Sequence record: OR513085.1
DNA: 64,000 nt
Strand: one strand, 5' to 3'
Shown: piece by piece, positions 5,786 to 54,048 of the stretch
Numbering within the stretch: position 1 is the first letter of the stretch
Layout: each line of letters opens with the position of its first letter
Made by a program: the position numbers and the translations under genes
Notes under the pieces: model-generated
What the model saw: the letters and a program-made list of their open reading frames with translations, nothing else
Told to the model about the DNA's origin: nothing
The model's database searches: none

Positions 5786-5841
5786 TTAACGTAATTTTAA
5801 CATTTTATGTTTTAATATGTCATAAAAAATTCTTAAATTTA
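5786..5841 (+). promoter_or_regulatory. promoter, TTAACA class
   Basis: TTAACG-N5-TTAACA, TTTTAATATGTC-N12-TAAATTTA; first 36 bp identical to 21938-21973. Confidence 0.8.
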
Positions 5842-5895
5842 CTATAACAAAATTAAACAATTTGAAGTACAAACCTAAACTTAAAACTTTACAAA

Positions 5896-6096
5896 ATGAC
5901 AACAATATTAACAACCACAGAAATTTACGCTATCTACGCTATTACCGTAGCAATATTTTTACTCACTGACTATGTAACAATTGGTAAGTCTGGAGCTTTA
6001 AGAAAAGCAATGACTATTACAAGAAGACTTGCAGGAGCTGCATTCATTGCAGTATTGCTGCTACAAATTATCCAATACTACTTACAGTCTAAATAA
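5896..6096 (+). CDS. small 2-TM membrane protein
   Basis: two hydrophobic helices. Confidence 0.6.
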   Translation: MTTILTTTEIYAIYAITVAIFLLTDYVTIGKSGALRKAMTITRRLAGAAFIAVLLLQIIQYYLQSK

Positions 6097-6104
6097 CAAT
6101 TGAC

Positions 6105-6323
6105 ATGACAAAATTAATGAATGCTTTAGCAAAGCTAGCTTCTCTAGGACATCCGTTCTATTACAGAATTGCGGTTACTCCGCAAAGCATTGAACTAAAA
6201 GTTTCTTATTGCCACAAAGGTTCTACACAACCTGCAGAAGACAACTACGTAGTTTCAAACACTGAAGCAACTAGAGAACGCCTAACTAAAGCAGTTACCA
6301 AAATAGTTAACTCACACAAATAA
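6105..6323 (+). CDS. hypothetical protein
   Basis: 72-aa ORF. Confidence 0.6.
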   Translation: MTKLMNALAKLASLGHPFYYRIAVTPQSIELKVSYCHKGSTQPAEDNYVVSNTEATRERLTKAVTKIVNSHK

Positions 6324-6335
6324 AAATAATGCATC

Positions 6336-8093
6336 ATGGGACGATACAATTTTAACATAACTGGCGATTACCTTGAAAACTTTATGAAAGACTGCTTTAA
6401 GTCAGGTTCTTTCAAAACATTCTACGAACTATGCCAAGACAACGGGTTTGACGAAGCTACTACAAAACATTGCTTTACTTTAGCATTTACTATGCAAGGT
6501 GAAAGCCGTGAAGATACTTTGTCGATCGACATTAACGTAGAACAACCAGAAGACTATGCAGAAATACTTTGGACCGGCTTAAAATCTTCAATACCTTTGG
6601 AATATTCAGACTTTAAGCATGAACTTGCATGGTACAGATTATTTGAATCTGACGAATCTTTGGATTTGTATTTCAGAAGACATCCTGCAGCTTTAGGAAA
6701 TATTTGCAGACTAGTACAATATGTTTCACGTGAAACAATAGTAAGCTTACTACGTGATAAGTTCTTTGCAGAGGAAGGTTACGAAGTTACTACGTTAGCT
6801 AAAGAAATTATGGCTGACAGATCATACGGAGTTAACGGGGTAATTGCTCAGGACGGTAAATTCTTAGCATGCGGATTCCAAGATCACATCAATATGCTAC
6901 CAGTAGCCAAGTCACTAGGATTAGTTGAAACTGACGATATAATGGCCGGCAGAGAATCTAATGCTATTCATATTTCCAGCAATAGCTACTCAGGTGGTGC
7001 TTCACATTACTTTAGCTCACCAGAATATTACGACTACTATGATGATCGTAAAATTAGCAATGAACAAATTGAAACTGTTTGGAATTCTGTAGACGAACTA
7101 AACCGATTTTATTTGAACAATTCTGGCTTAGTTACTGTAGGCGATTCATGTATGAAACTTTATGCAGGCAATGCTAACAGTGGTGCTAAATTTGGCAACT
7201 TAGAGTTCCTAAAGAATATTGTTAAGTTGGAAGAACGTTTCGACATTAAATTGCCTAGCTATGCTAACGTACTAACTGATGAACTAACTAATGCAGAAGC
7301 TATGATTGTTAGAACGTCACCAAAGAAAAGTATGCCAGGATTGTTAGAATCTATTGTAGTTATAGAACCTACGTTGAACAAAATTGGCAAAGCATGTGAA
7401 CAAATTGAAGCAGACTTTGAAAAGCATAATACTAGCGGACGTAACAAAATTCACTTCATGTTCCAGGAATTTATTGAAGGTGTTAATGGTGTGGCACATA
7501 TTGACTACTACCAAGCTATGGAAACTGGTGATTACAGACACCAAGGAGTAAATTTTAGATATGCTGCCTCAGAAAAACAAGGAGACATAGTAAACGGTGT
7601 TAAAAGTTCAACTGCAATATCATACGAAAATGCAGTAAAGCTTGAAAAGTTTATGAAGTTAATGGCTACCAGAATGTTTGCTAAAATTCAGGTAGAGTTT
7701 GTTGAGGACTTAAGTGGCCAACTTTATGTTCTACAAATAAGAACTTTCCTTAGCGAAAAAGTTACTAATGCTAGCAAAGAGCTATATGATAGCTATGCTA
7801 TACATGGCAAAACATTCTGCCAAGGTAACGCATACAAAGATGAACAAGTAATTTCGGTTAATGATGTACTTGTAGTAGATTCAGAGGCAACTTCCGAACA
7901 ACTTAAAGGCAAAAAATGTTTAATTGTCCTGGAAGATACTGACTTCTCGCATATCCTAGCATTGTCATATAATTTCAACATTCCGGCAATCTTTGCTATA
8001 CAAGAAAAGGACATATTCAAGAAAAAACTAAGTCAAAATAAGTACATAGTAGTTAATACTAGGTACCAAGAAGGCCTTATAAATTTTGTCTAA
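6336..8093 (+). CDS. PPDK/PEP-synthase-type ATP-grasp plus phospho-His swivel protein with unknown N-terminal domain
   Basis: GAKFGNLEFL (GGKxxNL), IVRTSPKKSMPGLLES (VRS..SMPG), FMFQEFIEGVNGVA, IQVEFV..GQLYVLQIRT, swivel SHILALSYNFNIPAIF (His539); no TIM barrel. Confidence 0.8.
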   Translation: MGRYNFNITGDYLENFMKDCFKSGSFKTFYELCQDNGFDEATTKHCFTLAFTMQGESREDTLSIDINVEQPEDYAEILWTGLKSSIPLEYSDFKHELAWYRLFESDESLDLYFRRHPAALGNICRLVQYVSRETIVSLLRDKFFAEEGYEVTTLAKEIMADRSYGVNGVIAQDGKFLACGFQDHINMLPVAKSLGLVETDDIMAGRESNAIHISSNSYSGGASHYFSSPEYYDYYDDRKISNEQIETVWNSVDELNRFYLNNSGLVTVGDSCMKLYAGNANSGAKFGNLEFLKNIVKLEERFDIKLPSYANVLTDELTNAEAMIVRTSPKKSMPGLLESIVVIEPTLNKIGKACEQIEADFEKHNTSGRNKIHFMFQEFIEGVNGVAHIDYYQAMETGDYRHQGVNFRYAASEKQGDIVNGVKSSTAISYENAVKLEKFMKLMATRMFAKIQVEFVEDLSGQLYVLQIRTFLSEKVTNASKELYDSYAIHGKTFCQGNAYKDEQVISVNDVLVVDSEATSEQLKGKKCLIVLEDTDFSHILALSYNFNIPAIFAIQEKDIFKKKLSQNKYIVVNTRYQEGLINFV

Positions 8094-8119
8094 TATTTAA
8101 CCTTTAATCAAAAAAGATC

Positions 8120-8590
8120 ATGAAATTAATTAAATCAAATAATGCCCTGCATGCACAAATAGAATCTCACGAAGAGTTATGCTACATGGAGGTACTGTTA
8201 CAGGTCGTATTCCGCGACATTTGCAAAGCATGCATAGAATCCGGTGAACCTCCATATAGGTACAATCACCTACTAGGAATGCTAAAAGGCCCGGCAAAAG
8301 CTACGTTTAGCCTGGCATGTATGTCTGCAGGAGTTGCTAAAATGTCAGAGTACACTGCACAAAAATTTACAACTGATCCGCTACTAAGCATGCAAAAATC
8401 CATGGATTCGTATATGTCTACACTTACAAAAACATTCATTAGACATGGTGAAGCATGCATTAGTATAGACTCAGGAGGCATACAATTCGGCCTTGAGGAA
8501 GCTGAAGTACTGGAAGAACTTAGTGCATTTCCAGGCTACACACTACAACTCGACAAATTTAGAGACTCGACATATTTCTGGACAGTATAA
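8120..8590 (+). CDS. hypothetical protein
   Basis: 156-aa ORF. Confidence 0.65.
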   Translation: MKLIKSNNALHAQIESHEELCYMEVLLQVVFRDICKACIESGEPPYRYNHLLGMLKGPAKATFSLACMSAGVAKMSEYTAQKFTTDPLLSMQKSMDSYMSTLTKTFIRHGEACISIDSGGIQFGLEEAEVLEELSAFPGYTLQLDKFRDSTYFWTV

Positions 8591-8603
8591 AAATTTAAAA
8601 CAC

Positions 8604-9305
8604 ATGACAAATAAAAAACACCAAGTAGTATATTTCAAAACTACTACAGGACGCTATGGAATTCATGCAGGCTTCCTAGTATTCAACAAAGAACAAATTA
8701 TCAAAACTATTAAAGACGACAGCTACTCTGGTAGTATACGTTACGGAATTGCAGACGGTAAAACTCAGTCTGGCCTACTTTCACAAATGCCAATAGAATT
8801 GTTTGAGTCGGAATTTCCTGACCACTTAAAGCTGTTTACAGCCAAACAAATTACTGCCAAGTTTTCAAAAGCTATTAGCGAAAAGTACGGAGAACATAAA
8901 ATAAAGGCCGCAATAAAAACGCTTAAGCCTTCTGAACTAAAACCAGGCTTCATTTATCAAGACAAAGACGGCCATAATGAAGTTTTCCTTGGCAAAGCTA
9001 CATGGACCGAAAGTCATACTAAAGCAAACAAAGCTAATGTAGAAAAAGAAGGTTATGCTTTTATGCGAATGTGGCAAATTACTCAAGGTACTGAAGACAC
9101 TAATGCAGAAAATGAACGTATGACCAGATGGGTAGATGTTCTTAAAACTAAACGCAAATACGTTAAGGAAGTCGGCAGGTTTGTTATGAAAAATATAAAG
9201 TCTGAGTATTCATATTATCGTGATGAACGTGGCTATATGTACCATGACCGTGATAAAATTGTCAATACTACTACATGGACACTAAAATTGCATGACTTTA
9301 CCTAG
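8604..9305 (+). CDS. hypothetical protein
   Basis: ATG at 8604 after A-rich leader; the track start at 8493 overlaps the upstream gene. Confidence 0.65.
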   Translation: MTNKKHQVVYFKTTTGRYGIHAGFLVFNKEQIIKTIKDDSYSGSIRYGIADGKTQSGLLSQMPIELFESEFPDHLKLFTAKQITAKFSKAISEKYGEHKIKAAIKTLKPSELKPGFIYQDKDGHNEVFLGKATWTESHTKANKANVEKEGYAFMRMWQITQGTEDTNAENERMTRWVDVLKTKRKYVKEVGRFVMKNIKSEYSYYRDERGYMYHDRDKIVNTTTWTLKLHDFT

Positions 9306-9343
9306 CTATTTTGTATTATAAAAACTAACAACAATACCTACAC

Positions 9344-10333
9344 ATGCACAAAATTGTTTACTTAGACACAGAAACTTCAGGATTGCCGCAAAGGCATGGC
9401 ACTCTTGAACAACAACCATACATACATTCCTGCTCAGTTATCAAAGAACATTTTGACGAACGTACAGGCGAACACTTAGAAGTTGAAAAATACGAAGTTT
9501 ATGACAGAGATACTGTTGACTTAGTTAATGAAGCTACCGTAAAAATCAACGGCATTACTAAGGAGTACTTGCTTGAGCACGGAATTCCTAGCGACGAAAT
9601 GTACGCAAAGATTAAGCGCTCTTTGGCTGATGCCGAGGTTATAGTATGTCACAACACTAAATTCGACTTACAATTACTTTGGTACACTGCTTTAAGACGT
9701 AGAGATAACGAGCTTATCATGAAAATTCTAACTACAAAAACATTCTGTACGTCAGCATACTCAAGACATTATAGCATTTCTGACAAAAAGCCATACCAAA
9801 TGAACCTTAGACATTTACATGATAAATTGTTTGGCTATGTTTTTGATGGCGCACATAATGCTTTAGCTGATACTATTGCTTTGCGTGATTGTACGCATGA
9901 ATTGCTTAAGCGTGGTGAAATTTCAGCAAAACATTTAACTTCGCCTACGTACTTTAGTTACGTAACTTTTGCAGAAGTTGGCGATGACGAATGGAAGCTG
10001 CAAATTTCAAACATTTGTCCTAAAACGTTTTATCCAATGACAACTCAGGAATCGTCGTCATTCAAGCTGTCTGAACTTACTAAAGCATTCAATGACTTTA
10101 CTATGGCATCATCTGTTATGTTTTTCCGAACTAAGGAAGACATTCAAAAAATTCAGACTGCATGCATTGAAAACTCAGGCTTCTGTACAACTTTAGGATT
10201 TAAGCTTATGACTTACTTAAACCGTGAGGATATTCTGGATAGTCGTGAACTTGCAGAATATCACAAGTCAATTGACAAAAAATTCATAAATCCTTTTGTA
10301 CTTTTCTCGGATAACAATAACAAATACGACTAG
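9344..10333 (+). CDS. DEDDh 3'-5' exonuclease (DnaQ-like) with C-terminal extension
   Basis: ExoI YLDTETSG, ExoII CHNTKFD, ExoIII AHNALADT. Confidence 0.9.
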   Translation: MHKIVYLDTETSGLPQRHGTLEQQPYIHSCSVIKEHFDERTGEHLEVEKYEVYDRDTVDLVNEATVKINGITKEYLLEHGIPSDEMYAKIKRSLADAEVIVCHNTKFDLQLLWYTALRRRDNELIMKILTTKTFCTSAYSRHYSISDKKPYQMNLRHLHDKLFGYVFDGAHNALADTIALRDCTHELLKRGEISAKHLTSPTYFSYVTFAEVGDDEWKLQISNICPKTFYPMTTQESSSFKLSELTKAFNDFTMASSVMFFRTKEDIQKIQTACIENSGFCTTLGFKLMTYLNREDILDSRELAEYHKSIDKKFINPFVLFSDNNNKYD

Positions 10334-10397
10334 GCAGGGTCTATGCTATCTGAACAGTCTTTATATGACAGGATAGGAATTTCCTGGACAGCCTAGC

Positions 10398-10429
10398 AAG
10401 CCTGGACATTTAAAATGTCCAGGCTTTTT
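10398..10429 (+). terminator. intrinsic terminator
   Basis: AAGCCTGGACATT...AATGTCCAGGCTT plus T-run. Confidence 0.75.
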
Positions 10430-10470
10430 GCATTTCAAAAGGAATATATAACTAAACAAACTTTACTTAC

Positions 10471-11724
10471 ATGGCTTTAAAAGATATAGTCGCAAATTCA
10501 TTCGCTAAGCAAGAATCGTCAATTGGTGCTGCAGTTAATGGAGTTTATGCTGACTTAACTGAACCTACATATTTAGTTTTTGAACCAATTTTTAACTTTA
10601 ATATGCCTACTGGCTTGCTGGCTGACGAGAGTCACGTTAACTCGGCGTTAGCGTTTTTGAAGCGAAATGGCGAAATGGCCAGGTATACTCAGCTTAAAAA
10701 TGCTATAGCTTCATTGAAAATTATGCTTCAGCAATCGCCTTGGATTTTTGAGTCAGTTACAGGTTTTTCTGATGCTATGTCTTACGAAATGAACGAGCCT
10801 GAAATTACAGATGGCAAAATTGAAATGGTTTTGCATGAAACTTTGGACATGCGAGTATCAAATTTCATTCATACTATGCAACAAGTTATATACGACTACA
10901 ATGTACGAGTTGTTGAAATATTGCCAAGAAACTTACAGGAATTCTCAATGGGAATTTTGATACATGAACTACGTTTTTTCCAGGACACTAACCAAGTAGC
11001 TTCCAAAATGCTAAAACAATTTGATGGCAATGGCGACGCTCAGGCAGTTATGTCGTCTAACCACTTTTTGCTACACTTTGGTAAATGTAGAATTTTACGT
11101 ACGTCAGGTAACAATATGTTCAAAGAATTTAGCAACGAAACTATTGATGCAGTTAAAATGAACCTGGACATTGAGTACAAAACATTTGTACAGACGCACA
11201 ACTTCAACACGCTTGCCGAGTATGACATAACTGGCCAGGCTGACCAAGTTAAGGTTGAAACCGCACAGGATAAAGTTCAGCAACTTTCTGATAAACTTAG
11301 TTCCGCAGTAGGTACGTCAAAAGTAGGCTTAGTAGGTAGTAATATTTTTGGTAACGCTGCAAATGTAGTAGGTAACCAATTCAACTTAAATTCATATTCT
11401 GCTGCAGGTATTTCTATGGACACCGTTAAAGCTAAACTAGCCAATGCTTATGATGTTGCTGAAGGTATTGCAATTAACTCAGCGTCCAGGTATGCAGAGC
11501 AATTGGCTAACAAAGGTGTACATGAACTTAAAAACATTTTTGGTGACGTAACTCAAGAAGTTGCAGGATTCCTGCCAAAACGCCTAACTACTAACATTTT
11601 CTTTCAAGGAATGTTAGGCCAATTCGAGGACTTAAAGAATCCTAGAATATGGGACATTATTGACACGCTGGCATCAGACACACACGTTAACAAACGAGGC
11701 ACTTACAATATCTATCGTCAATAG
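10471..11724 (+). CDS. late structural protein, possibly tube-fold baseplate protein (gp48/gp54-like)
   Basis: TATATAA late-like leader at ~10445; adjacent to gp5-like gene; fold assignment is by impression only. Confidence 0.4.
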   Translation: MALKDIVANSFAKQESSIGAAVNGVYADLTEPTYLVFEPIFNFNMPTGLLADESHVNSALAFLKRNGEMARYTQLKNAIASLKIMLQQSPWIFESVTGFSDAMSYEMNEPEITDGKIEMVLHETLDMRVSNFIHTMQQVIYDYNVRVVEILPRNLQEFSMGILIHELRFFQDTNQVASKMLKQFDGNGDAQAVMSSNHFLLHFGKCRILRTSGNNMFKEFSNETIDAVKMNLDIEYKTFVQTHNFNTLAEYDITGQADQVKVETAQDKVQQLSDKLSSAVGTSKVGLVGSNIFGNAANVVGNQFNLNSYSAAGISMDTVKAKLANAYDVAEGIAINSASRYAEQLANKGVHELKNIFGDVTQEVAGFLPKRLTTNIFFQGMLGQFEDLKNPRIWDIIDTLASDTHVNKRGTYNIYRQ

Positions 11725-11757
11725 ATATTGACATGCTTAGCATATAACATTTAAATA

Positions 11758-12531: not shown

Positions 12532-12559
12532 ACAAATGCGGCAATATTGCCGCATTTGT
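12532..12559 (+). terminator. terminator-like palindrome
   Basis: ACAAATGCGGCAATATTGCCGCATTTGT. Confidence 0.7.
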
Positions 12560-12647
12560 TGTACATTATAAACATAATCGAATAACACATTAAGTATGCA
12601 AAATGCGTACTTCGTAACACATTAACTTAAAAACCTCATTAATTACA

Positions 12648-13934: not shown

Positions 13935-13976
13935 CATCTCTCAATTAGCTTGATTTTTTCATATTTGACATGAGTG

Positions 13977-14004: not shown

Positions 14005-14066
14005 AGTTTATTAACGTTAAAAATTTTAACACTTTAATTGCAAATTTAACGTTATACGTATAACGT

Positions 14067-14111
14067 TTAACACTTTAAATTTTCAAAAGTCAAATAAAAT
14101 GTATAAATTTA
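14067..14111 (+). promoter_or_regulatory. promoter, TTAACA class
   Basis: TTAACA at 14067, TTTTCAAAAGTC-N12-TAAATTTA. Confidence 0.7.
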
Positions 14112-14260
14112 CATATTATTAAAGTTTACTGAAAATGTAAACATGCCTAAATCAGACCAGAGTGGTCAAAGTTTAAACAAAACAACTTAAAACAAACTTT
14201 TACATTTACGGGTAATTGGAAAACACTTTCAATATAGGCTGCCCACCTAAACCAAAACTT

Positions 14261-14960: not shown

Positions 14961-14976
14961 CAAAAATAAAAACATC

Positions 14977-21937: not shown

Positions 21938-21993
21938 TTAACGTAATTTTAACATTTTATGTTTTAATATGTCGAAAAAAATGCTTAAATTTA
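21938..21993 (+). promoter_or_regulatory. promoter, TTAACA class
   Basis: TTAACG-N5-TTAACA, TTTTAATATGTC-N12-TAAATTTA. Confidence 0.8.
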
Positions 21994-22027
21994 TACTATA
22001 AAAATAAAACAATAAAACATTTAGAAT

Positions 22028-22327
22028 ATGTCAACTATAGCAAATCTTACAATCGAACAAAAAAGAACTTTATTAGCGCAACTTTATAGAAGCGAAAGTA
22101 ATACTGAAGCTGATAAAGTTAGACTAGATGAGTTAATGCATGATCAGGCAACTTTCTTGAAAACTGATAATCCTAACCTTTATGTAAAGGCTTGTTTAAT
22201 TCCAAATCACGATGATGACGTAGTATTTTATGATGGCGAATGGCATGTAGTAGATTTTGATACTTACGATGGAGTAATTCAAAACTTTATTGTAGTTGAT
22301 GGCAAAATTATTAACTTAGAATATTAA
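22028..22327 (+). CDS. hypothetical protein
   Basis: 99-aa ORF after promoter. Confidence 0.65.
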   Translation: MSTIANLTIEQKRTLLAQLYRSESNTEADKVRLDELMHDQATFLKTDNPNLYVKACLIPNHDDDVVFYDGEWHVVDFDTYDGVIQNFIVVDGKIINLEY

Positions 22328-29005: not shown

Positions 29006-30172
29006 ATGAAAACAATAAAAGCTTACAAATACCGAATTTATCCTAACGCTACTCAAAAGGTAGTGCTTGATAAGTCGTTTGGCTGTGCACGTTTTTATTG
29101 GAATACTTTAGTTGCCGAATTAAATTCATATTCAAACGAGCATACTCCAGTATACAAAAGCGCTTCGCAAATACGTAGCGAATTTACTTGGATGCAAGAA
29201 GTGTCATGCTCAATGCTACAACAAAGGCGTATAGACTTTGATAGAGTACGTAACCAGTATTTTAACAAAAATCGCAAAACTAAATTGGGTAGAATTAAAT
29301 TCAAACGCAAAAATGAAAACCAATCATTTAGAATGAACAATCAAAATTTTGCGTTGCTTGACAATAAACTCAAAGTTACTAAATTAGGCTATATTAAAAT
29401 AAGCATTGACCGCAGGCCTCCTGAAAATGCTAAATACTTATCGGTTACTATTAGCAAAAATAATCTTAACGAGTACTATGCATCAGTATGCTTTGAATAT
29501 GAACATGAACCAAAAATAAAACAAACTACAAAAAATGTAGGCTGCGATTTAGGTATAGCATCATTGCTTACTTTATCGGACGGCTTACAATTTGCAAATC
29601 CTAAAATATTCAGAGAAAACCAATCTGAGTTAAGAAGATTGCAACAACATTTATCTAAAAAGCGTAAAGGAAGTTCTAGACATAACAAATGCAGAATTAA
29701 AGTCGCAAAGCTTTATAAAAAGATGACTAGGCAACGTGAATGGCTACTACATAATATTTCAAAATATGTAGTAACTAATTACAATGAAATTGCTTTAGAA
29801 GATTTGTCTATATCGTCTATGCGTAAACGTTATAGAATGAATAAGCAATTTAGACGTGCTTTGGAGGACGCTTCAATGACCAAATTAAAAAATTATATTT
29901 GGTACAAGCAGCAAGAATATGGTATACATGCACGTTTCATTCCACGTTATACAGCGTCATCTAAAGAATGCTATGAATGTGAGAACGTACAAAAAATTGC
30001 AATGCGAGAACGTGAATTTATTTGCACGTCATGCGGTACTGTACGTGACCGAGACTTAAACGCTGCTTTAGTAATACAAAGAAAAGCACTAGGTAGAATC
30101 AGCCCTAGTATACAAACATTGAGTGATATTAAGTCGTTACATCCACTTGTGGTTATAACGCAATTACAATGA
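29006..30172 (+). mobile_element. tnpB: IS200/IS605-family TnpB RNA-guided endonuclease, no TnpA in window
   Basis: HTH KAYKYRIYPN..Q..FGCARFYWN; RuvC-I GCDLG, RuvC-II ALEDL, CxxC..CxxC Zn ribbon, RuvC-III DRDLNAA. Confidence 0.93.
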
Positions 30173-30259: not shown

Positions 30260-31537
30260 ATGAAATTACAAAATCACATTATTAACGAAGAAGGCAATAT
30301 TATTTTTGATGGTAAGTGGGATATGTCTAAACTTGAAACGTATACGCCAGAGGAATTACAAATTATTAAGGATGATGCGTTAGTTTGGTCAATTCTAAAT
30401 GGTTCGATGTCAGTTTCACAAAAAACTATGATGAACTCAATTTATGGCGCAACAGCTAATGAGTGGTATTATTTCGCATCCATAGAAGCTGCTGATGACG
30501 TTACTGCTGAGGGTAGGTATTACATTAAGTTGTCGGAACAGATAATTATGGATTATATGAAAAATGTTTGGCACTTAGATAAAGAATTGCATAAACATTT
30601 AAAAGAACATCCAGAACTTAAAGCTTCTTTCAAAGACCCGGATTGGCGAGCTGAAGTTAAGCAAATAGATGTTAATTTGGATTACGTACTTTATATGGAC
30701 ACTGACTCGATGTACGTTACGTTTGAGGAATTATTTGAAACTATTGGCTATGACCCGCAACATGACGGTTCATATGCCAGGTTTATTATGGAAATGAATT
30801 CGTTCAGACTACGTGGATTGTTTAAGGAAAAAATTGGTGAACGTGTAGCCGAAAGACATGGTGAAAACTTTTTAGTTTTCGATTTGGAATCGGTATCTGA
30901 AACTACATGTTTCCTGGCAAAGAAAAAATATGTGATGTCGTACAAAATGGAAGACGAAAAAATTTATGACGACCCACTTAAACATATAAAAGGTAAAGGT
31001 GTTGAGCTAGTTCAGCAAAAATTAGCAGTGCCAATCAAAGACATGATTCGTTTCATGGTAGTTCAAATGTTCAAAGGTAAAATTACGAATGTTAACTACA
31101 AAACTTACATGAGGTATATGTTCCAGCAATTCTCGCAACTACCTTTCCAGCAAAGATGTACTTTAGGTTCAGCAAACACGTATGATAAATATGTGCTTAA
31201 CGATACTACAAGATGTGAATTTGCTTCTGGCGCAGGTGCAGATGTTAAAGGTATGGCATATTACAACTTTGATGTTAATGCAAAAGGACTTAAAACAAAA
31301 TATGAAGTTCTTAAAGGCGGTAAGTTAGTTTGGTATTATGCAAAACCTACGCAAGAGCATCCTGATAGATTTTCATACGCATTCCATGTTGACGAATATC
31401 CTGAGGAACTTGCTCCTGAAATGGACATCGAAACTCAATTTATGAAACTTGTAGCAGGACCTGTTGGTAGAATTGTAGCATGTGCCGGAATTGATGTAGG
31501 AAATCCTCTGGCATCTCAAATGATGATGGAATTATAA
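30260..31537 (+). CDS. polB: family B DNA polymerase, C-terminal half (motifs B and C), gp43B-like
   Basis: QKTMMNSIYG, VTAEGR, YMDTDS, KKKY, KGVE. Confidence 0.92.
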   Translation: MKLQNHIINEEGNIIFDGKWDMSKLETYTPEELQIIKDDALVWSILNGSMSVSQKTMMNSIYGATANEWYYFASIEAADDVTAEGRYYIKLSEQIIMDYMKNVWHLDKELHKHLKEHPELKASFKDPDWRAEVKQIDVNLDYVLYMDTDSMYVTFEELFETIGYDPQHDGSYARFIMEMNSFRLRGLFKEKIGERVAERHGENFLVFDLESVSETTCFLAKKKYVMSYKMEDEKIYDDPLKHIKGKGVELVQQKLAVPIKDMIRFMVVQMFKGKITNVNYKTYMRYMFQQFSQLPFQQRCTLGSANTYDKYVLNDTTRCEFASGAGADVKGMAYYNFDVNAKGLKTKYEVLKGGKLVWYYAKPTQEHPDRFSYAFHVDEYPEELAPEMDIETQFMKLVAGPVGRIVACAGIDVGNPLASQMMMEL

Positions 31538-38662: not shown

Positions 38663-38713
38663 TAGCCAAAATATTTTCAAATGTCAAAAAATGTTATATA
38701 GTTATTGTAACTT

Positions 38714-38769
38714 TTAACAAAAGTTTAACAATTAGAATTTTTTACTTTGTAAAATAATTCTTATATTTG
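38714..38769 (+). promoter_or_regulatory. promoter, TTAACA class
   Basis: TTAACA-N5-TTAACA, TTTTTTACTTTG-N12-TATATTTG. Confidence 0.75.
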
Positions 38770-38896
38770 CATTATACAAATTTGATAAATATAAAACAAT
38801 CAAAACGCTTCAATACTAGGCCGGAGGACTAAAGTAAGTGTTCATTTTAACAACAAACCTATTTTTAATCGCCGAAAGGCACAACAGCAAAACAAA

Positions 38897-39703: not shown

Positions 39704-39724
39704 CACATAAACAACAAAAGCTAC

Positions 39725-39759
39725 AAAAAGCCTGAACGTTCGTAACGTTCAGGCTTTTT
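39725..39759 (+). terminator. intrinsic terminator
   Basis: AAAAAGCCTGAACGTT-cgt-AACGTTCAGGCTTTTT. Confidence 0.8.
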
Positions 39760-39835
39760 GCGTTGTATGCAATATGCGTAGCATGCACAATTTAATTTAA
39801 ATTGTGTACATATACTACACATTACAACTACAATT

Positions 39836-40594: not shown

Positions 40595-40733
40595 AACGTT
40601 ATTACGTAACAAACGTTCTGCTACAATAACGTAATTGCTACATTTTGCAAAAGCCTTAGCTAACGTTATTACGTAACAAACGTTCTGCTACAATAACGTA
40701 ATTGCTACATTTTGCAAAAGCCTTAGCTAACGT
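40595..40733. repeat. exact 67-bp tandem duplication, palindrome-rich
   Basis: units 40595-40661 and 40662-40728 plus partial AACGT. Confidence 0.95.
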
Positions 40734-40741
40734 AACGTACG

Positions 40742-40780
40742 TAAAGCATAACGTTCAACAACAAATTACGTTATGCTTTA
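40742..40780. repeat. 13-bp inverted repeat
   Basis: TAAAGCATAACGT-N13-ACGTTATGCTTTA. Confidence 0.9.
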
Positions 40781-40907
40781 ATATGCAAGCATGCACAACT
40801 TACTAAAAAGTTATGCAAGTAAAACTTTTCCATAGGAATATATAAACTACCTAACTATACACAATAAAGTTCAAATATAGGCATTAGCCTTTAAAGCAAT
40901 ACACCAC

Positions 40908-46602: not shown

Positions 46603-46659
46603 CACTTAAATTTTTAAAGTTAGGTTTTAAACAACGTGTGTTACACGTATATTTGAACG

Positions 46660-46690
46660 AACCTGGATTCTTTTTAGAGTCCGGGTTTTT
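46660..46690 (+). terminator. intrinsic terminator
   Basis: AACCTGGATTC..GAGTCCGGGTTTTT. Confidence 0.75.
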
Positions 46691-46777
46691 GCGTTCAAAA
46701 CTAGTGAAAATATTTTCAAAAACTTTTCAAAAAAGTGCCCAAAATGGCCCATTTTCAAAATAACTTTGCAGGTAGGT

Positions 46778-46785
46778 TATAAATA
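46778..46785 (+). promoter_or_regulatory. T4-type late promoter
   Basis: TATAAATA 32 nt upstream of the MCP ATG; gp55-like sigma present in window. Confidence 0.7.
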
Positions 46786-46817
46786 ATTTAACAATAACAA
46801 AAATAAAACATTTTCAC

Positions 46818-48539
46818 ATGCAAACATTATTTCCAAACGCCAACCAAGTTGGCAACATGGTAGACAGATGGTCTGAATTTATTAACGAAGCAGCTCCTAA
46901 AGGTGGTAGTACTCTATCTGATGGTAAGAGAGCAATGATCGCTCAGGTTGCAGAATTCCACGCTCATGGCAAGGATATCGCAACTGGAGGATTCTTGAAC
47001 GAATCTATCATCGGTACAAATATTATGTCAAACGGTGCTAACATGAACGGAATGGGTTCTATTACTCTTCCTACTAACGTTAAAGCTGGATTTACCCAAT
47101 TCAACCAACAAACTCCTGGTTCTGGTGATGTTCCTGTGACTGTGCTTTCAATGGCAATGTCAGTAGCTGCGACTACTATCGGTTTTGATTTGTTACCAAC
47201 TATTCCAATTTATCAGCCTGCAGTAATGCTACAGTACGTAGATTACCTTTACGGTGGTGGTAAACTTGATTCGGCAGATAACCCTCCTTTGATCGTTATG
47301 GCTAGAATTGAGGAACTTAGAGGACACCTTGATCTTAGACAAGGTTCTAAAGTTGCTATCCACTCTGTTGCAGGTGATGCTACTTCTGGATGGACATTTG
47401 AGTTCGTTGGATTTACAAGATTAGAAGGATATGCAACTTTAAAGGTTGACACTTTCGCTAACAAAGTAACTCCTGCATTAGGTTCTCTTGCTTTAGTTGA
47501 ATTTACTATTGACGGTGGTGCTCCTGTAACAGTTGCTCCTGCTGGAAATCCTAAATTGGAATTAGCTAGAGCGGTTGAAAACCACTTCTCAATGTTCACA
47601 GCTTACGGAAACCTTGATGGTGAAGGAGTTGATAGAGCTGAAGCTGAAAAAGGTACAAGATCAGTTATCGAAATGAGAACTTACTCTAAAGTAGTAAGAA
47701 CTAAAGAACATGCTGTAGAAGGTATCGTTTCAAGACAACAAGCTAGAGATATCAAAGCTATGGGTCTTGATGCATTCCCTCAATTGAAAGTTGCAATGCA
47801 GAATGACATCTCTCAGTCATTAAACAAGGAAATCCTTATGAGAATGAGACAGATGGGTGTTTCTACACACTTAATGTTACAGAAATCTCAAGGAGTTAAC
47901 TTGAACACTTACATTGACTTACCAGCTAACACTTCTAAGCCAATTGTACAGTTCAAAACTCAGCCTCTTATCGACAAGAACGGAGTTAACCAAACTGCTA
48001 ACTTCTTACCAGCTCCTAACTCTGAAACTAACTCAGCTGCTGAAAACCTTTGGACTAGACAAAGAAGAGTAACTTCTACCATCATCACTGGTGCTGCTCT
48101 AGTAGGACAAGCTTCTTTCCACGGTTCTGCTGACGCTGTAGTTGTTAACTCTCAGTTAATGGCAGCTATTAAGGAATCTGTTGGTTACCAGCCAGCTACT
48201 ATTGAGAACAAAATCTCTCAGTCTACAAAGGCTCTTTATTATGCAGGTACTATTTCTGACGTTGCAGTTTACTGTGACCCTAACATGAAATGGAACGATA
48301 CTACTGCTATCTTGGCTAGAACAGGTAAAACTGATGACGGTCTTGATATTAACCAATTAGCAGAAGGGTTAGTTTTTCTTCCGTATGTCTTGAGTTCGGA
48401 AGTTGAAATTATCACTGAAGGAACTATGGGTCCTAAAGCGTTAATCGAAACTGTTTATGCTATCGGAGAAATTGGTATCAGACCAGAACTTGCTTACTTA
48501 ACTATCGTATTCGATAACGGATTTGGTAGATGGGCATAA
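46818..48539 (+). CDS. major capsid protein gp23
   Basis: 573 aa after the protease; gp23-like VLSMAMSVAATTIGFDLLPTIP..YVDYLY, AEAE, RQQARDIKA; N-terminal INEA/LNES sites; strongly biased codons. Confidence 0.92.
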   Translation: MQTLFPNANQVGNMVDRWSEFINEAAPKGGSTLSDGKRAMIAQVAEFHAHGKDIATGGFLNESIIGTNIMSNGANMNGMGSITLPTNVKAGFTQFNQQTPGSGDVPVTVLSMAMSVAATTIGFDLLPTIPIYQPAVMLQYVDYLYGGGKLDSADNPPLIVMARIEELRGHLDLRQGSKVAIHSVAGDATSGWTFEFVGFTRLEGYATLKVDTFANKVTPALGSLALVEFTIDGGAPVTVAPAGNPKLELARAVENHFSMFTAYGNLDGEGVDRAEAEKGTRSVIEMRTYSKVVRTKEHAVEGIVSRQQARDIKAMGLDAFPQLKVAMQNDISQSLNKEILMRMRQMGVSTHLMLQKSQGVNLNTYIDLPANTSKPIVQFKTQPLIDKNGVNQTANFLPAPNSETNSAAENLWTRQRRVTSTIITGAALVGQASFHGSADAVVVNSQLMAAIKESVGYQPATIENKISQSTKALYYAGTISDVAVYCDPNMKWNDTTAILARTGKTDDGLDINQLAEGLVFLPYVLSSEVEIITEGTMGPKALIETVYAIGEIGIRPELAYLTIVFDNGFGRWA

Positions 48540-48575
48540 TCAATAAAGCTTCGGCTAAATTGATTTAACAATATG

Positions 48576-48608
48576 AACCTCGGTTACTTTTTGTAGCCGA
48601 GGTTTTTT
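48576..48608 (+). terminator. intrinsic terminator
   Basis: AACCTCGGTTAC..GTAGCCGAGGTTTTTT. Confidence 0.8.
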
Positions 48609-48620
48609 GTGTTAAAATAG

Positions 48621-48663
48621 TTGCAAAAATATTTTCATATGTTAAATAAAATGATTAAATTTA
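48621..48663 (+). promoter_or_regulatory. promoter, TTGC class
   Basis: TTGC...TTTTCATATGTT-N12-TAAATTTA. Confidence 0.75.
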
Positions 48664-48667
48664 TATA

Positions 48668-50098
48668 ATGATTAAACGTAAAAGACAAACATATAATGAC
48701 GTTATAGCCGATTGCAAAAAAGCTCATGGTAATTATTATGACTATGTAGATACGTCTGCTACTTGGTATAAGAAAACTGACAAACTTAGAATTATATGTC
48801 CTGTTCATGGCGAATTTGAACAATCTGGCAAAAACCATAGTAAAGGCCAAGGCTGCACAAAATGCAAAAAGAACATACAATCGTATGACCAAATTATAAC
48901 TAAAGTCCTGGAAATTCATGCGTCCAGAGGCTATATTTACGAAGACACTTCGGCAGAATTTACAGTTTCAACATCGTCATTCCTTAAAGCTAATTGTCCT
49001 AAGCATGGCGAATTTGAAGTCAGGGCGCATGCACATAGTGTAGGTGTTTTAGGATGTCAAGGATGCTATACGGATGATTTAGTTGATCGTCAAAGATATA
49101 GTAAAGATGAAATGCATAGCATTTGTAAAGTTATTTTAGCTAAACGTAAATGTACAATTTTAGACATAACTTTTTATGTCGATAAAGCAAATTCAAATTT
49201 TATAATAAATTGCCCTAAGCATGGCAATTTTGAAAAGAATGCTTATCAAATTTTATTAAAACAAGGTTGCCCTAATTGCGTAGGCTATAATTCCTCAAAG
49301 GCTGAAACATTTTTGAGAGATCATTTAGTTGGCCAAGGTATTGCAGATGCTGTAGGTCGTAAGCGTTTTAGACATCATGAAACTAATAAACTTTACGAAA
49401 TAGACGTGCAATCGCCAAGCTTAAAAATTGGAATAGAATTTAACGGAATACATTGGCATAGAGGCGAAGTATTCAAGCATAAACATATGCTAAAAACTAC
49501 AAGCCTAGACTATATGAACTGGCAGTTAATTCATATTTTTGAGGATGAATATCATGCAAAATTTAATGCAGTAATGTCAATGATTAATCATAAGCACGGA
49601 GTTACTAAACAAAAAATTCATGCCAGGAAAACTAAGACTGCTTTAATTGACGAAGACACTTACGTACAATTCTGCAACGAAAACTGCATACAAATTTTTG
49701 ACAAGCTGGCATTTAATTACGTAGGGCTATATTTAGCAGAAACATTAGTTGGCGTAATTGCGTATAACGTAGATACTAAAGCTAACGTAGACATCATAAA
49801 TATTGCGATGTTAAACAATCATAATATAATTGGCGGAGTCGGCAAATTAGTAGCTTATGTAGAACGTTCGGAACGTCCTGCATCAATAACCGCTACGCTA
49901 AACAGGCAATTCTCAACTAAGCATAACGTTTTTGCAAAACTAGGCTTTGATTTTGTTGAATATACAGAACAGAATTTTATGTACAGTATACATAGCAGTC
50001 CTAGGATTTTGCCAGAACATACGTCTATTGAACATCAAATAGATTCTAATAAAGTCTGGGATGTCGGTAACATTATTATGAAAAAAGTGTTCAAATAA
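48668..50098 (+). CDS. free-standing Hef-like/DUF559-type homing endonuclease
   Basis: three CPxHGxF..GCxxC Zn ribbons; EIDV..KIGIEFNGIHWH..LIHIFEDE nuclease core. Confidence 0.8.
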   Translation: MIKRKRQTYNDVIADCKKAHGNYYDYVDTSATWYKKTDKLRIICPVHGEFEQSGKNHSKGQGCTKCKKNIQSYDQIITKVLEIHASRGYIYEDTSAEFTVSTSSFLKANCPKHGEFEVRAHAHSVGVLGCQGCYTDDLVDRQRYSKDEMHSICKVILAKRKCTILDITFYVDKANSNFIINCPKHGNFEKNAYQILLKQGCPNCVGYNSSKAETFLRDHLVGQGIADAVGRKRFRHHETNKLYEIDVQSPSLKIGIEFNGIHWHRGEVFKHKHMLKTTSLDYMNWQLIHIFEDEYHAKFNAVMSMINHKHGVTKQKIHARKTKTALIDEDTYVQFCNENCIQIFDKLAFNYVGLYLAETLVGVIAYNVDTKANVDIINIAMLNNHNIIGGVGKLVAYVERSERPASITATLNRQFSTKHNVFAKLGFDFVEYTEQNFMYSIHSSPRILPEHTSIEHQIDSNKVWDVGNIIMKKVFK

Positions 50099-50130
50099 TT
50101 TTCATATGTCGTAAAAAATGATTAAATTTA
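50099..50130 (+). promoter_or_regulatory. early/middle-type promoter
   Basis: TTTTCATATGTC-N12-TAAATTTA. Confidence 0.8.
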
Positions 50131-50157
50131 CATATAATTAAAAATAACGATAACAGC

Positions 50158-50340
50158 ATGAAAAAGACATTCCTACTTAGAGACTGGCAAAATTTATACT
50201 ATTGCTTTGAGCATTATCAATTTTGGCACGTAGATAAAGGTCAAGCTAAAATGTTTTATTCAATGGAAGACGTTGAAGCTACAGTAATTGAAAATAACCT
50301 ACAGGACGTAGAAATCGTAACTTTACTAAGCAAAGCATAA
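50158..50340 (+). CDS. hypothetical protein
   Basis: 60-aa ORF after promoter. Confidence 0.6.
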   Translation: MKKTFLLRDWQNLYYCFEHYQFWHVDKGQAKMFYSMEDVEATVIENNLQDVEIVTLLSKA

Positions 50341-50343
50341 AAT

Positions 50344-50784
50344 ATGGCTATGAACAAACAAAACATACAGCGTGCAATAAACCATATTAGAACATTACGG
50401 CCTGAAAATTTTGATATGCAAGATTACCGTGCAGCCCAATTTACTGACAAAGCTCCTGAATGCAAAACTATAGGATGCATAGTAGGCCATTGCACTATAC
50501 TTGATGCCAAAAACATCAATGAAAAATTTATAGATATGCGTAACGATTCCATTATGTTCAACGAATGGTCAGTCGAATTCTTTGGCATTGGTATTTTGCA
50601 AAGAAGCTGGGACTATATGTTTTCATGTAATTGGGCTAAGTCACAAAAAACTAACACTATAGAACATGCAATTTATCGCATGGAACGTATAATTGACGAT
50701 TATAAGCCAGGCAATATTGACGATGAATATTCATACGAAACTGGCGCTACTAGGCTTGAACCTGGATATACTGACAACGACTAA
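50344..50784 (+). CDS. hypothetical protein
   Basis: 146 aa; CKTIGCIVGH motif. Confidence 0.7.
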   Translation: MAMNKQNIQRAINHIRTLRPENFDMQDYRAAQFTDKAPECKTIGCIVGHCTILDAKNINEKFIDMRNDSIMFNEWSVEFFGIGILQRSWDYMFSCNWAKSQKTNTIEHAIYRMERIIDDYKPGNIDDEYSYETGATRLEPGYTDND

Positions 50785-50840
50785 CTTTTATGCACTACAG
50801 TGCAATCTATAAACATAATAACAAATAAATTTTTAAAACA

Positions 50841-51758
50841 ATGACAAACATCAACGCGACCGAAAGACTCATTGCTATCTGGCAAAATGATTATGCTAGG
50901 CACACTAAAAACCACAAAACAGTCAACGAAGACGGCATTCTTAAAAAGTATTGGAAAAATCCAATTACACATTATTATGCTAATATTGGCACTGATGTAC
51001 TTAGACAAATGCTAGAAGATTCAGAAGCTTATGACTATCCTGGCTTAGAATTTGCAGAACCTCAGCAAAATCCTAACAAAACTGCAATGCCTGAATACAT
51101 AGGCAGTTATGCACTTTCAGAGGACCAGGTCATTCAATTTTATCATGACAAAGACCTCAAAAATGACATGCAGATGTACTATGCAGAAGAGGAATATGAT
51201 TATCATCGACTACTTTTCGGAAGTCGTAGCAATCCTACATTAGGCAAAGTATTCTCAAAAGTTTATTGTAACATCATTACAGATACGCCAATTTCAGACT
51301 TCCTTAGACTTCATATTTACCGAGTACTAAACAACCTGGATAATGAAGGCACTAAATTCTACTTGCTACTTTCTGCAGCTGCAGCAAAACAACTAAAGCA
51401 TGAGTCAGACTTTACTGAACAAATTTCAATGACTACAATTAGCCAAATTAAACACAACACATCAAAATTTGGCACGTTCCGACCAAAATGGAAAAAGACT
51501 TCTAATTATGGCAGAGCATTCAGGAACATTTTAGAAAATCATGCATGCATAGAATTGTACGAATGCCATGATTCAGGAGCTTCTATTAACCAGGAGCATA
51601 ATTATCCTATGGCTGCTATACTTACTAGCTACAAAATGCATGAACGTTTCGATAATTGTAGCATACATTCACCAATGCATCCTAACGATCATACGCCAAC
51701 ATCATTAAAGTCAGAACTAATTGAAAATATTTTGGACAAAGCTTTAAAAACTTGCTAA
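50841..51758 (+). CDS. hypothetical protein
   Basis: 305-aa ORF. Confidence 0.7.
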   Translation: MTNINATERLIAIWQNDYARHTKNHKTVNEDGILKKYWKNPITHYYANIGTDVLRQMLEDSEAYDYPGLEFAEPQQNPNKTAMPEYIGSYALSEDQVIQFYHDKDLKNDMQMYYAEEEYDYHRLLFGSRSNPTLGKVFSKVYCNIITDTPISDFLRLHIYRVLNNLDNEGTKFYLLLSAAAAKQLKHESDFTEQISMTTISQIKHNTSKFGTFRPKWKKTSNYGRAFRNILENHACIELYECHDSGASINQEHNYPMAAILTSYKMHERFDNCSIHSPMHPNDHTPTSLKSELIENILDKALKTC

Positions 51759-51794
51759 AATGTTTTCACGTTTCAAATAATTTTCTTATATTTG
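51752..51794 (+). promoter_or_regulatory. promoter, TTGC class
   Basis: TTGC...TTTTCACGTTTC-N12-TATATTTG. Confidence 0.75.
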
Positions 51795-51823
51795 TATTAT
51801 TAAAATAACACACATACAAAACA

Positions 51824-52558
51824 ATGCAAAACAAACCAATCTTAACAAGAGATCAAAAGCTAGCAATCCTAGGAGATAACCCACATAATTGGGACGTTGA
51901 CAACTTGGAAATTGTACAGGACATTGCAATAACAAACGAATTTGTAATGCAGGCTAACGAGGCAAACTACAAAACGTTGCTAGGCTTAGGCTGGACCAAC
52001 CACTACACAATTCATTTGTTGGATAAAATCAACCTCAACTATTACATAGACACTCCAGAAGTTTCAGGAAAACCTTCAAGCGACTTCAAAATTTCAATGA
52101 GGAATCACTTTGACCAGGATGTTGCCGAAGACTTAGGAACTGTACCGAACTCAGAAGTAGGAACTGCATTTACAAACTTATGGACTAGGCAAAATGCTTT
52201 AGTTACACATTTGTTCAAAGCATCAAGCATTATGAATACTATGTACGGCAATTTTGGTAAAACTATAATCGTAAATTCACAACTTGCTGCGGCTATTAAA
52301 AGTACAGAATTGTTCAAGCCTACACCTGTAGAGGAATTGGCTGAAACGTCATCAACTTCAATGCCATATGTTGCAGGTACGATTACTACCGAAGATGGCA
52401 AAATGTCACTAAAAGTCGTAGTTAATCCTCAGCAGCCATGGGCAGATACTACTGCAGTATTGTATGACGGTGACTTTGACTTCCAAACAATTGAACTTGA
52501 GGAAGGCTTAACTTCAATTTCATTCGCATTCAATAACGGATTAGGCCCATGGGCGTAG
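51824..52558 (+). CDS. truncated paralog of MCP (C-terminal half)
   Basis: shares NLNxYIDxP, PNSE..NLWTRQ, VNSQLxAAIK, YxAGTI, WxDTTAxL and terminal NGxGxWA with 46818-48539. Confidence 0.9.
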   Translation: MQNKPILTRDQKLAILGDNPHNWDVDNLEIVQDIAITNEFVMQANEANYKTLLGLGWTNHYTIHLLDKINLNYYIDTPEVSGKPSSDFKISMRNHFDQDVAEDLGTVPNSEVGTAFTNLWTRQNALVTHLFKASSIMNTMYGNFGKTIIVNSQLAAAIKSTELFKPTPVEELAETSSTSMPYVAGTITTEDGKMSLKVVVNPQQPWADTTAVLYDGDFDFQTIELEEGLTSISFAFNNGLGPWA

Positions 52559-52782
52559 AATTAACCTCAGAAGAAAAGAAGGCGTATATCCAGTCGAAAG
52601 GCTGGACTACCCTTTGGCATGACAACTATTGGGTACATTCAGGAATCATGGCCGGTGCCAACCTAGATTATTGTGGAATTGATTTAAACTCTGCATACAA
52701 ATGCCAATTAAAGCATGAAGCGCCAAAAGAAGTACAGAATAATAAACTTCCAGGCTTCAAAGACCACAACAATTTAACATAG
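52549..52782 (+). CDS. hypothetical protein
   Basis: 77-aa ORF overlapping previous stop. Confidence 0.6.
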   Translation: MGVELTSEEKKAYIQSKGWTTLWHDNYWVHSGIMAGANLDYCGIDLNSAYKCQLKHEAPKEVQNNKLPGFKDHNNLT

Positions 52783-52826
52783 CGGCTAAGCTGCAATACT
52801 TTTATAACAACAAACAATACAACAAC

Positions 52827-53240
52827 ATGAAACAAAGACTAACAAAACTATTTACATTCTCATTCGTACTAATTGCACTACTTTCACTACAATCATGCTG
52901 GGAATTTTCAAGACAGCAAGCTATCAATGACGCTGAGGCTAAAGGTATTGCAACCTTAAAAGAATCCGAGTCTTCCAAGAAAGCTATGGTTGAACAAGCT
53001 AAAGCTGAAAACCAGGCATCTACACTTAAGGCTGAAGCTATGGTTAAAATTGCAACTGCCCAGGCTAACGCTGAAATTGAACGAGCTAAAGGTGTTGCCA
53101 GAGCTAATGAAATTATCGGCCAATCGCTTAAAGGTAACAACGAATACTTAAAGTACTTGCAAATTGACGCAATTAAGGAATCCAAAGGTGCCAAAGTTTA
53201 CATTCCTACTGAGGCAGGACTTCCAATTATTGAAAGATAG
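52827..53240 (+). CDS. lipoprotein with SPFH/prohibitin-like C-terminal coiled coil
   Basis: lipobox LQSC; AEIERAKGVARANEIIGQSL..YL..IPTEAGLPI. Confidence 0.75.
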   Translation: MKQRLTKLFTFSFVLIALLSLQSCWEFSRQQAINDAEAKGIATLKESESSKKAMVEQAKAENQASTLKAEAMVKIATAQANAEIERAKGVARANEIIGQSLKGNNEYLKYLQIDAIKESKGAKVYIPTEAGLPIIER

Positions 53241-53261
53241 ACTAATTCGTATAAATATAGC

Positions 53262-53293
53262 AATCCCAAGTGCCTGGTGTACTTGGGATTTTT
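53262..53293 (+). terminator. intrinsic terminator
   Basis: AATCCCAAGT..ACTTGGGATTTTT. Confidence 0.75.
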
Positions 53294-53353
53294 GTGCTTT
53301 GTATGGACCTTGCTAGGCACTAATATATACTTTATCAAACAAATTATTAAACT

Positions 53354-53584
53354 ATGACAACTCAACACGACATAACGATTCAAAACGTTACGGGTTCTGA
53401 CAGCGGAGTTTGCGTTGTCACCCTCAAAAACTCAATTGATGAACAGACTAAACTAAGTATTGTAGCTAAACCAAGCTTTGTTTCAGTAGTTCCGGTAATG
53501 GGTTCAAACAAAACTTTAAAACTAATATGGCATGCGGAAACAATTGCCGAACAATACAACGTCAAGCTCAAAATTGAGCGCTAA
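53354..53584 (+). CDS. hypothetical protein
   Basis: 76-aa beta-rich ORF. Confidence 0.55.
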   Translation: MTTQHDITIQNVTGSDSGVCVVTLKNSIDEQTKLSIVAKPSFVSVVPVMGSNKTLKLIWHAETIAEQYNVKLKIER

Positions 53585-53624
53585 TTGACGTTCTGCTTCT
53601 TGCAACTTTGTCATGTGTATTTAG

Positions 53625-53656
53625 AAAAGCCCTAGTCAAATTTGACTAGGGCTTTT
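53625..53656 (+). terminator. intrinsic terminator
   Basis: AAAAGCCCTAGTCAAA/TTTGACTAGGGCTTTT. Confidence 0.8.
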
Positions 53657-53683
53657 CTTGTGTGTAAAAATTGTTGAAAATAC

Positions 53684-53726
53684 TTGCCAAAACATTTTCA
53701 TATGTCGAATAATTGTTATATATTTG
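53684..53726 (+). promoter_or_regulatory. promoter, TTGC class
   Basis: TTGC...TTTTCATATGTC-N12-TATATTTG. Confidence 0.8.
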
Positions 53727-53754
53727 TAATAACAAAATGAAACATATTAATATT

Positions 53755-54015
53755 ATGACAACTACAAATTATACTGAAATTGAATTGGCTATTTTAAACT
53801 CAGAAAATTATAAGCATAACTCACAAAGTATAGATTATCTTGGTGATTTTTACAAAACTAACAATGACCAAAGCGTATTTTCAGTTATATCAAAAACTGA
53901 AAGTGAAATTAAAATGCATATGTTTGATGTTGAAGATGATGGAAGTCATTCAAATGCATACACAAAAATTGAATCTTTAAAAACTTTAAATTTTAACGAT
54001 TTTTTAACACTTTAA
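53755..54015 (+). CDS. hypothetical protein
   Basis: ATG 53755 (or 53737) downstream of promoter. Confidence 0.6.
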   Translation: MTTTNYTEIELAILNSENYKHNSQSIDYLGDFYKTNNDQSVFSVISKTESEIKMHMFDVEDDGSHSNAYTKIESLKTLNFNDFLTL

Positions 54016-54048
54016 ATTTTTTACTTTCAATTATTTTTCTTAAATTTA
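53993..54048 (+). promoter_or_regulatory. promoter, TTAACA class
   Basis: TTAACG-N5-TTAACA, TTTTTTACTTTC-N12-TAAATTTA. Confidence 0.75.

Follow-up and report, generated by a model that had tools for sequence, protein, structure and literature searches.

Results

The promoter family of MA9V-2

The stretch analysed here (the window) comprises 64,000 nucleotides, bases 124001-188000 of the genome of Chryseobacterium phage MA9V-2 (OR513085.1, 218,539 bp), whose host is C. indologenes MA9 and whose sister phage, MA9V-1, shares approximately 86% identity with it. Nearly all genes are on the + strand, and the element under study is a short repeat, built from TTAACA or TTAACG half sites, that precedes five promoters of the window. 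These promoters belong to a large family. When the -7 region was used as the seed of a position-weight scan, 42 copies of a promoter cassette of about 75 bp were detected in MA9V-2, all on the + strand and 16 of them in the window, and none in shuffled sequence; the same family has 46 copies in MA9V-1. The cassette consists of a -33-like TTTTC, a spacer bearing ATGTC, a -7 box TA(A/T)ATTT(A/G) preceded by TGCT or TTCT, and a conserved start region. Sigma-A promoters of the Bacteroidota carry a -33 TTTG and a -7 TAnnTTTG that are 19-21 nt apart; in the 42 copies TTTT(C) stands 20 nt before the -7 box, and the cassette is a predicted promoter of this type. Upstream of the -33 element, at about -59 to -43, lies a variable slot which holds AAAATAGTTGC in about half of the copies. 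The promoters go unmentioned in the published MA9V-2 paper.

Tandem half sites in a fixed register

In four promoters of the window the slot is occupied by an exact TTAACR-N5-TTAACA tandem, always intergenic and on the + strand (Table 1), where 0.10 such tandems would be expected by chance and none of 100 shuffles reached four. The promoter of the RlpA-like gene MA9V2_174 has the proximal half site only, its distal slot (14056-14061) reading ACGTAT without a half-site match. The original prediction, which was made from the letters of the window alone, had described these four repeats of 11-bp period and the half site at 14067, and all five were recovered as described. It had also placed them in a single register relative to the -7 element. 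This was confirmed in 5/5 promoters, with exactly 31 nt separating the end of the proximal half site from the TA of the -7 box (N31); in the copy at 5786, the distal and proximal half sites are at seed-44 and seed-33 of the scan, respectively. The 36 identical bp noted between the copies at 5786 and 21938 were likewise found by direct reading. Across the copies the half sites are kept and the A/T-rich linkers differ.

Direct repeats of 11-bp period are the binding targets of OmpR/PhoB regulators, an example being the PhoP motif of Bacillus subtilis, TT(A/T/C)ACA. Pho boxes comprise at least two direct repeats with a period of 10-11 bp, each formed by a block of 6-7 bp and an A/T-rich linker. 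The phage half sites are 11 bp apart and follow a 7+4 layout, in which conserved block and A/T-rich linker together make up the 11-bp period as in known Pho boxes, and their TTAAC core matches both the B. subtilis motif and the cyanobacterial Pho box PyTTAAPyPy(T/A) (PMC10976474).

Two further observations concern the RlpA promoter. Its distal slot is filled by a perfect 20-bp palindrome, AACGTTATAC|GTATAACGTT (window 14045-14066), and additional copies of TTAAC lie out of phase upstream of it (14010-14040).

Distribution in MA9V-2, MA9V-1 and uncultured phages

The complete MA9V-2 genome holds 8 exact TTAACR-N5-TTAACR tandems, and 6/8 fall in the 120-bp zones preceding family promoters, these zones covering 2.3% of the genome (P ~4e-9). 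The promoter-linked tandems outside the window are at record 60891 (+) and record 30844 (inverted). For both phages together, 13/15 exact tandems are immediately upstream of family promoters, 8 of them direct, at seed-44, and 5 inverted, at seed-50. The inverted tandems are at record 30844-30860 in MA9V-2 and at 22277, 85958, 88671 and 205014 in MA9V-1, and four of the five are within long terminator hairpins that read AAAATGCCAC...GTGGCATTTTT. In the slot, TTTAAC(A/G) stands at one and the same position in 6 copies of the cassette in MA9V-2 and 12 in MA9V-1, with a second half site 11 bp upstream in 5/6 and 3/12, respectively. Between the two phages, the slot modules of orthologous promoters often differ, being either the box or AAAATAGTTGC, as at the DNA ligase gene, which indicates that the slot is readily exchanged.

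A BLAST comparison of two box-bearing promoters with 50,697 records of cultured phages gave matches in MA9V-1 and MA9V-2 alone. An IMG/VR search with the proximal half site and the adjoining conserved bases returned promoter-like matches in several contigs, and in all of these the distal copy, which was absent from the query, was present. Searching IMG/VR with the tandem alone gave 135 distinct sites; the -7 box stood at the exact MA9V offset in 33 of them and at any other offset in at most 7. One whole contig of 199.7 kb (G001) has approximately 28 promoters of the same architecture, 13 with an exact in-register tandem and 2 with one shifted by a single base. The MA9V capsid protein was found at 30% identity in one of five IMG/VR contigs and went undetected in the other four, these contigs being fragments; judged by such comparison, the box-using contigs would be at most distant relatives of MA9V.

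Some features of these genomes were recorded alongside. A further upstream module, TTGTTAATAAC, with inverted GTTA/TAAC, precedes the sigma gene MA9V2_076 (record 62255-62300) and is seen again in uncultured phages (IMG/VR L015-L018, L022, L024, L025 and G001), directly before the tandem slot. The gene phoH is present in heavily box-using contigs (G001:105830-106555, G002 and G003), and the regions upstream of phoH in these three have no tandem. Neither pstS nor phoH was found in MA9V-2, and phoH is likewise missing from MA9V-1.

Association with phosphate genes of the Bacteroidota

Metagenome contigs were scanned for the tandem followed by N31 and TAnnTTTG, yielding at least 118 distinct sites. 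A TTG at the canonical -33 distance, which the search did not force, is present in 39 of the 118 matches listed, indicating that many of these are genuine Bacteroidota promoters; several lie on contigs of up to 50% G+C. Pfam analysis of the first open reading frame (ORF) behind 56 of the listed sites identified phosphate-uptake proteins in 11/56 (PstS twice, PHO4 five times, Na_Pi_cotrans three times and the phosphate-selective Porin_O_P once), which among the matches listed corresponds to a binomial P of ~6e-15 at a background of 0.5%, itself a generous figure. Eight additional ORFs were scanned: one site leads an operon of an OmpR/PhoB-type regulator (Trans_reg_C) and PstS, and another precedes a TonB receptor whose Pfam set is that of the receptor in the PhoBR operon of Flavobacterium johnsoniae (PMC8115612).

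In an unselected test, orthologues of phosphate genes were fetched by protein homology alone and 12 upstream regions were inspected, 7-8 of which carry the motif in the N31 register. Three have the exact tandem, N31 and box (L306, L311 and L319), one combines an exact tandem with a weak -7 box (L310), three have the same register with at most two mismatches (L307, L312 and L313) and one stands at N30 (L309). The remaining 4/12 are unclear, including a plasmid-borne pstS of Hymenobacter (Cytophagales) with one exact half site and no clear -7 box. According to their source names, the orthologues come from Bacteroidales (PHO4 and Na/Pi) and Sphingobacteriales (pstS of Solitalea, Anseongella, Pedobacter and Rubrolithibacter). 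The position of the five phage boxes thus recurs, unforced, in the three exact regions and the three with mismatches, and some of the bacterial promoters add in-phase repeats 3 and 4 over the -33 region, like classical Pho boxes. The half site therefore does lie upstream of Pho-regulon genes in the lineage of the host, at the level of the phylum only.

Neighbouring genes and other intergenic motifs

Among the ten first downstream genes, Pfam found a domain only in the RlpA-like MA9V2_174 (DPBB_1), and the function of the others is mostly unknown; the unit starting from 5830 extends to a DEDDh exonuclease. A weak family copy at 38694 lies directly upstream of the core at 38738.

One sub-type of the family carries an inverted repeat, TTCCCAAA-N10-TTTGGGAA in MA9V-2, which spans the -33 element and has a run of T behind it. 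In G001 the arms vary from copy to copy with their complementarity kept, an arrangement that resembles a terminator hairpin incorporated into the promoter that follows. Family promoters are present at both termini of the linear record (1-130 and 218410-218539; seeds 88 and 218500), which suggests that the MA9V-2 record has a terminal repeat. A second class of conserved intergenic motif has the form ...AGCATGCACAACTT-N5-AAGTTGTGTACATAA, and shorter TATACATAA-like boxes precede structural genes; the two kinds of motif are candidates for middle or late promoters. A TnpB-family gene (window 29006-30172) lies between two DNA-polymerase pieces in MA9V-2 and is missing from that place in MA9V-1; a scan of genome contigs with the phage TnpB protein found no relative.

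Table 1. Half sites, promoter cores and other intergenic motifs; positions are those of the window unless marked otherwise, and scores are position-weight matrix (PWM) scores.
Feature	Position	Strand	Match or score
Tandem TTAACG-N5-TTAACA, Pho-box-like, upstream slot of the MA9V2_165 promoter	5786..5802	+	exact match
Core: -33-like TTTT(A) at 5810, spacer ATGTC, -7 box TAAATTTA (5834-5841), start region	5810..5849	+	PWM 40.2
Lone proximal TTAACA, in register, promoter of RlpA-like gene MA9V2_174	14067..14072	+
Core, -7 box TAAATTTA (14104-14111)	14080..14119	+	PWM 43.2
Tandem TTAACG-N5-TTAACA, promoter of MA9V2_185	21938..21954	+	exact match
Core, -7 box TAAATTTA (21986-21993)	21962..22001	+	PWM 50.0
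Tandem TTAACA-N5-TTAACA, promoter of MA9V2_205	38714..38730	+	exact match
Core, variant spacer TTTTTTACTTTG, -7 box TATATTTG (38762-38769)	38738..38777	+	PWM 28.1
Tandem TTAACG-N5-TTAACA, promoter of MA9V2_220	53993..54009	+	exact match
Core, variant spacer TTTTTTACTTTC, -7 box TAAATTTA (54041-54048)	54017..54056	+	PWM 36.2
Further family promoters in the window	seeds 1807, 2544, 14683, 33760, 48652, 50119, 51783, 53715, 57805, 58161	+
Inverted-repeat promoter sub-type	1777-1830 (record 125777-125830); record 88, 217803, 218500; G001 (L176-L185)
Second motif class and shorter boxes	39704-39835, 40595-40907; record 12403, 70271, 89970, 99329, 105121

Discussion

A probable host-type Pho box on phage promoters

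The presence of the same tandem, at N31, before phosphate-uptake genes of the Bacteroidota supports the reading of the phage element as a PhoB-type site and points to phosphate as the signal. By this comparison of sequences the tandem is very probably a Bacteroidota Pho box, and we favour, with moderate confidence, the view that the phage repeats are host-type Pho boxes which tie a subset of the phage promoters to the phosphate-starvation signal of the host. The original prediction had proposed a site for an OmpR/PhoB-type response regulator, and the N31 tandem before pstS, PHO4, Na/Pi and porin O/P genes is in line with this. It had left the host signal as nutrient or envelope status: the promoters of Pho genes and of the fetched orthologues argue for phosphate, and nothing was found in favour of envelope stress. 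Of the genes it had assigned to the signal, rlpA is preceded by a single half site, and the putative regulated set reaches beyond the window.

PhoB of Bacteroides fragilis binds to the pst promoter and is needed for pstSCAB and for a PHO4-type permease; the report gives no consensus site (PMC3547664). The same gene families, the pstS operon and the PHO4-type permease, are found behind the motif here. Our literature search found no published Pho-box consensus for the Bacteroidota and no description of host PhoB control for phages of this phylum. The Trans_reg_C domain was not detected by Pfam in the proteins of MA9V-1 or MA9V-2, and a binder from that family would therefore be that of the host. 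We infer that PhoB is the binding protein, that activation is the effect and that C. indologenes uses the box.

In the mechanism that we propose, each box would consist of two 6-bp half sites, TTAACA or TTAACG, spaced by one turn of the helix. Shortage of phosphate in the host would lead PhoR to phosphorylate PhoB, and PhoB-P, as a head-to-tail dimer, would occupy both half sites from the same face of the DNA, directly upstream of the -33 element. Bound PhoB would then help RNA polymerase to initiate, and the downstream units would be raised, namely those from MA9V2_165 onward, 185 onward, 205 and 220 onward, as well as 073 outside the window. Since the core is the same as in family members that lack the box, basal promoter activity is probably kept, and PhoB would act as a conditional boost.

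Several observations weigh against this interpretation. A good distal half site is missing in 10/18 promoters that have the proximal one, many of them in MA9V-1. Immediately 5' of the proximal half site the phage invariably has T, whereas Pho genes of bacteria mostly have C; the phage linkers are A-rich, and the phage and bacterial populations of sites are similar, not identical. Genes without a phosphate role (TetR, MarR and HU-like) also occur behind the metagenome sites. The box stands on about half of the early-type promoters of G001, more than a narrow stress regulon would lead one to expect, and its exchange with AAAATAGTTGC could mean that the two modules are functionally equivalent and not conditional. 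Taken together, module swapping and the high share of boxes in G001 could indicate a general activator or a temporal class. Use of the box by C. indologenes is itself extrapolated from two other orders, the Bacteroidales and the Sphingobacteriales.

Alternative explanations

Some of these points would be accommodated if the tandem were bound by another factor, either a different host regulator of the OmpR family, e.g. one responding to envelope stress, or a phage-encoded or virion-delivered activator that marks a delayed-early or middle class, with the resemblance to Pho boxes being partial or coincidental. The differences in flanking base and linker and the non-phosphate genes in metagenomes would then find an explanation, dominance of the box on the early-type promoters of G001 is what would be expected of a temporal class, and the phage does encode two sigma-like proteins and many small unknown proteins. 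However, Pho-regulon genes of two orders share exactly the same hexamer, 11-bp period and N31 register, neither phage has a Trans_reg_C domain, and no homologue of the sigma protein MA9V2_076 was found in five box-using IMG/VR contigs, all of which are fragments. An activator of the MotA kind would have its middle-promoter box at another position, the site here being at -59 to -43 with the -33 element kept; a search with MotCF, the C-terminal domain of MotA, gave no match, and neither did the control for that search. On balance we regard a factor other than PhoB as rather unlikely.

The tandem may also be thought of as a constitutive UP-like element, that is, two subsites for the alpha C-terminal domain (alpha-CTD) which are interchangeable with AAAATAGTTGC and raise promoter strength. 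Its location and 11-bp subsite spacing fit the UP elements of Escherichia coli, and such an element could be swapped at orthologous MA9V-1 and MA9V-2 promoters and placed on many G001 promoters, as is seen for this module. The invariant C in each half site is nevertheless unlike the A/T tracts of UP elements, the bacterial motif marks phosphate-uptake genes and not housekeeping genes, and inverted copies occur at another fixed register. A constitutive UP-like or unknown-activator module was our initial reading; it was downgraded because the downstream genes in metagenomes are phosphate transporters, and we now consider the UP-like element improbable. It is hardly credible that the repeats are functionless and were spread by duplication and gene conversion among cassette copies, as the 36 bp shared by 5786 and 21938 and the exchange of modules between orthologous sites might suggest, given that the other copies have half sites in common but not linkers and that tandem and register are kept in distant phages whose capsid protein is 30% identical or undetectable.

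Comparison with known systems

With the Pho boxes of B. subtilis and the cyanobacteria, the element read here as a host-type Pho box shares direct repeats of 11-bp period, an A/T-rich linker and a nearly identical TTAAC core. In B. subtilis at least four repeats span -60 to -20 and in cyanobacteria the units are of 8 bp, whereas MA9V keeps the -33 element and has its two repeats entirely upstream of it. The arrangement also recalls that of T4, with its UP-element early promoters and MotA-box middle promoters: MA9V, a T4-like jumbo phage, has about 40 promoters for the host polymerase that are long and highly conserved, and an extra upstream box defines sub-classes among them. In T4, however, the MotA box at -30 replaces the -35 element, while the MA9V site is beside an intact -33.

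Control of phage genes by host PhoB is already known in cyanophages (P-SSM2 pstS and phoA; S-PM2d; PMC10976474 and work cited there), and what would be new is its occurrence in a phage of the Bacteroidota. In the cyanophages a host Pho box on phage promoters allows host PhoBR to raise phage genes when phosphate is scarce, and in S-PM2d the targets include genes without a role in phosphate uptake (PMC10976474), which resembles the situation proposed here. The MA9V case differs in the host phylum and in the promoter type (Bacteroidota -33/-7), in that it is predicted from sequence, and in that no phosphate-acquisition genes are involved. It differs further in the form of the box, which is a clean two-repeat cassette in one fixed register, set in a 42-copy family and swapped between orthologous promoters.

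Implications

To date, TTAACA-N5-TTAACA placed 31 nt before TAnnTTTG is apparently the first explicit Pho-box sequence and placement rule for the Bacteroidota, and this rule can be used for the prediction of Pho regulons and for building phosphate-responsive promoters in this phylum. The phage family also offers a case of control elements being exchanged inside a multi-copy promoter family. More tentatively, it is possible that PhoB is a main driver of early transcription in a mostly uncultured lineage of Bacteroidota jumbo phages, with the box acting as a plug-in cassette which sister phages gain, lose and exchange; in that case the dependence on phosphate could be tuned quickly, and soil phosphate would elicit different responses from MA9V-1 and MA9V-2. 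If the reading of the repeats as host Pho boxes is true, the availability of phosphate would be tied to the infection programme of Bacteroidota jumbo phages, and soil phosphate could alter the efficacy of a phage that is under development against a root-rot pathogen.

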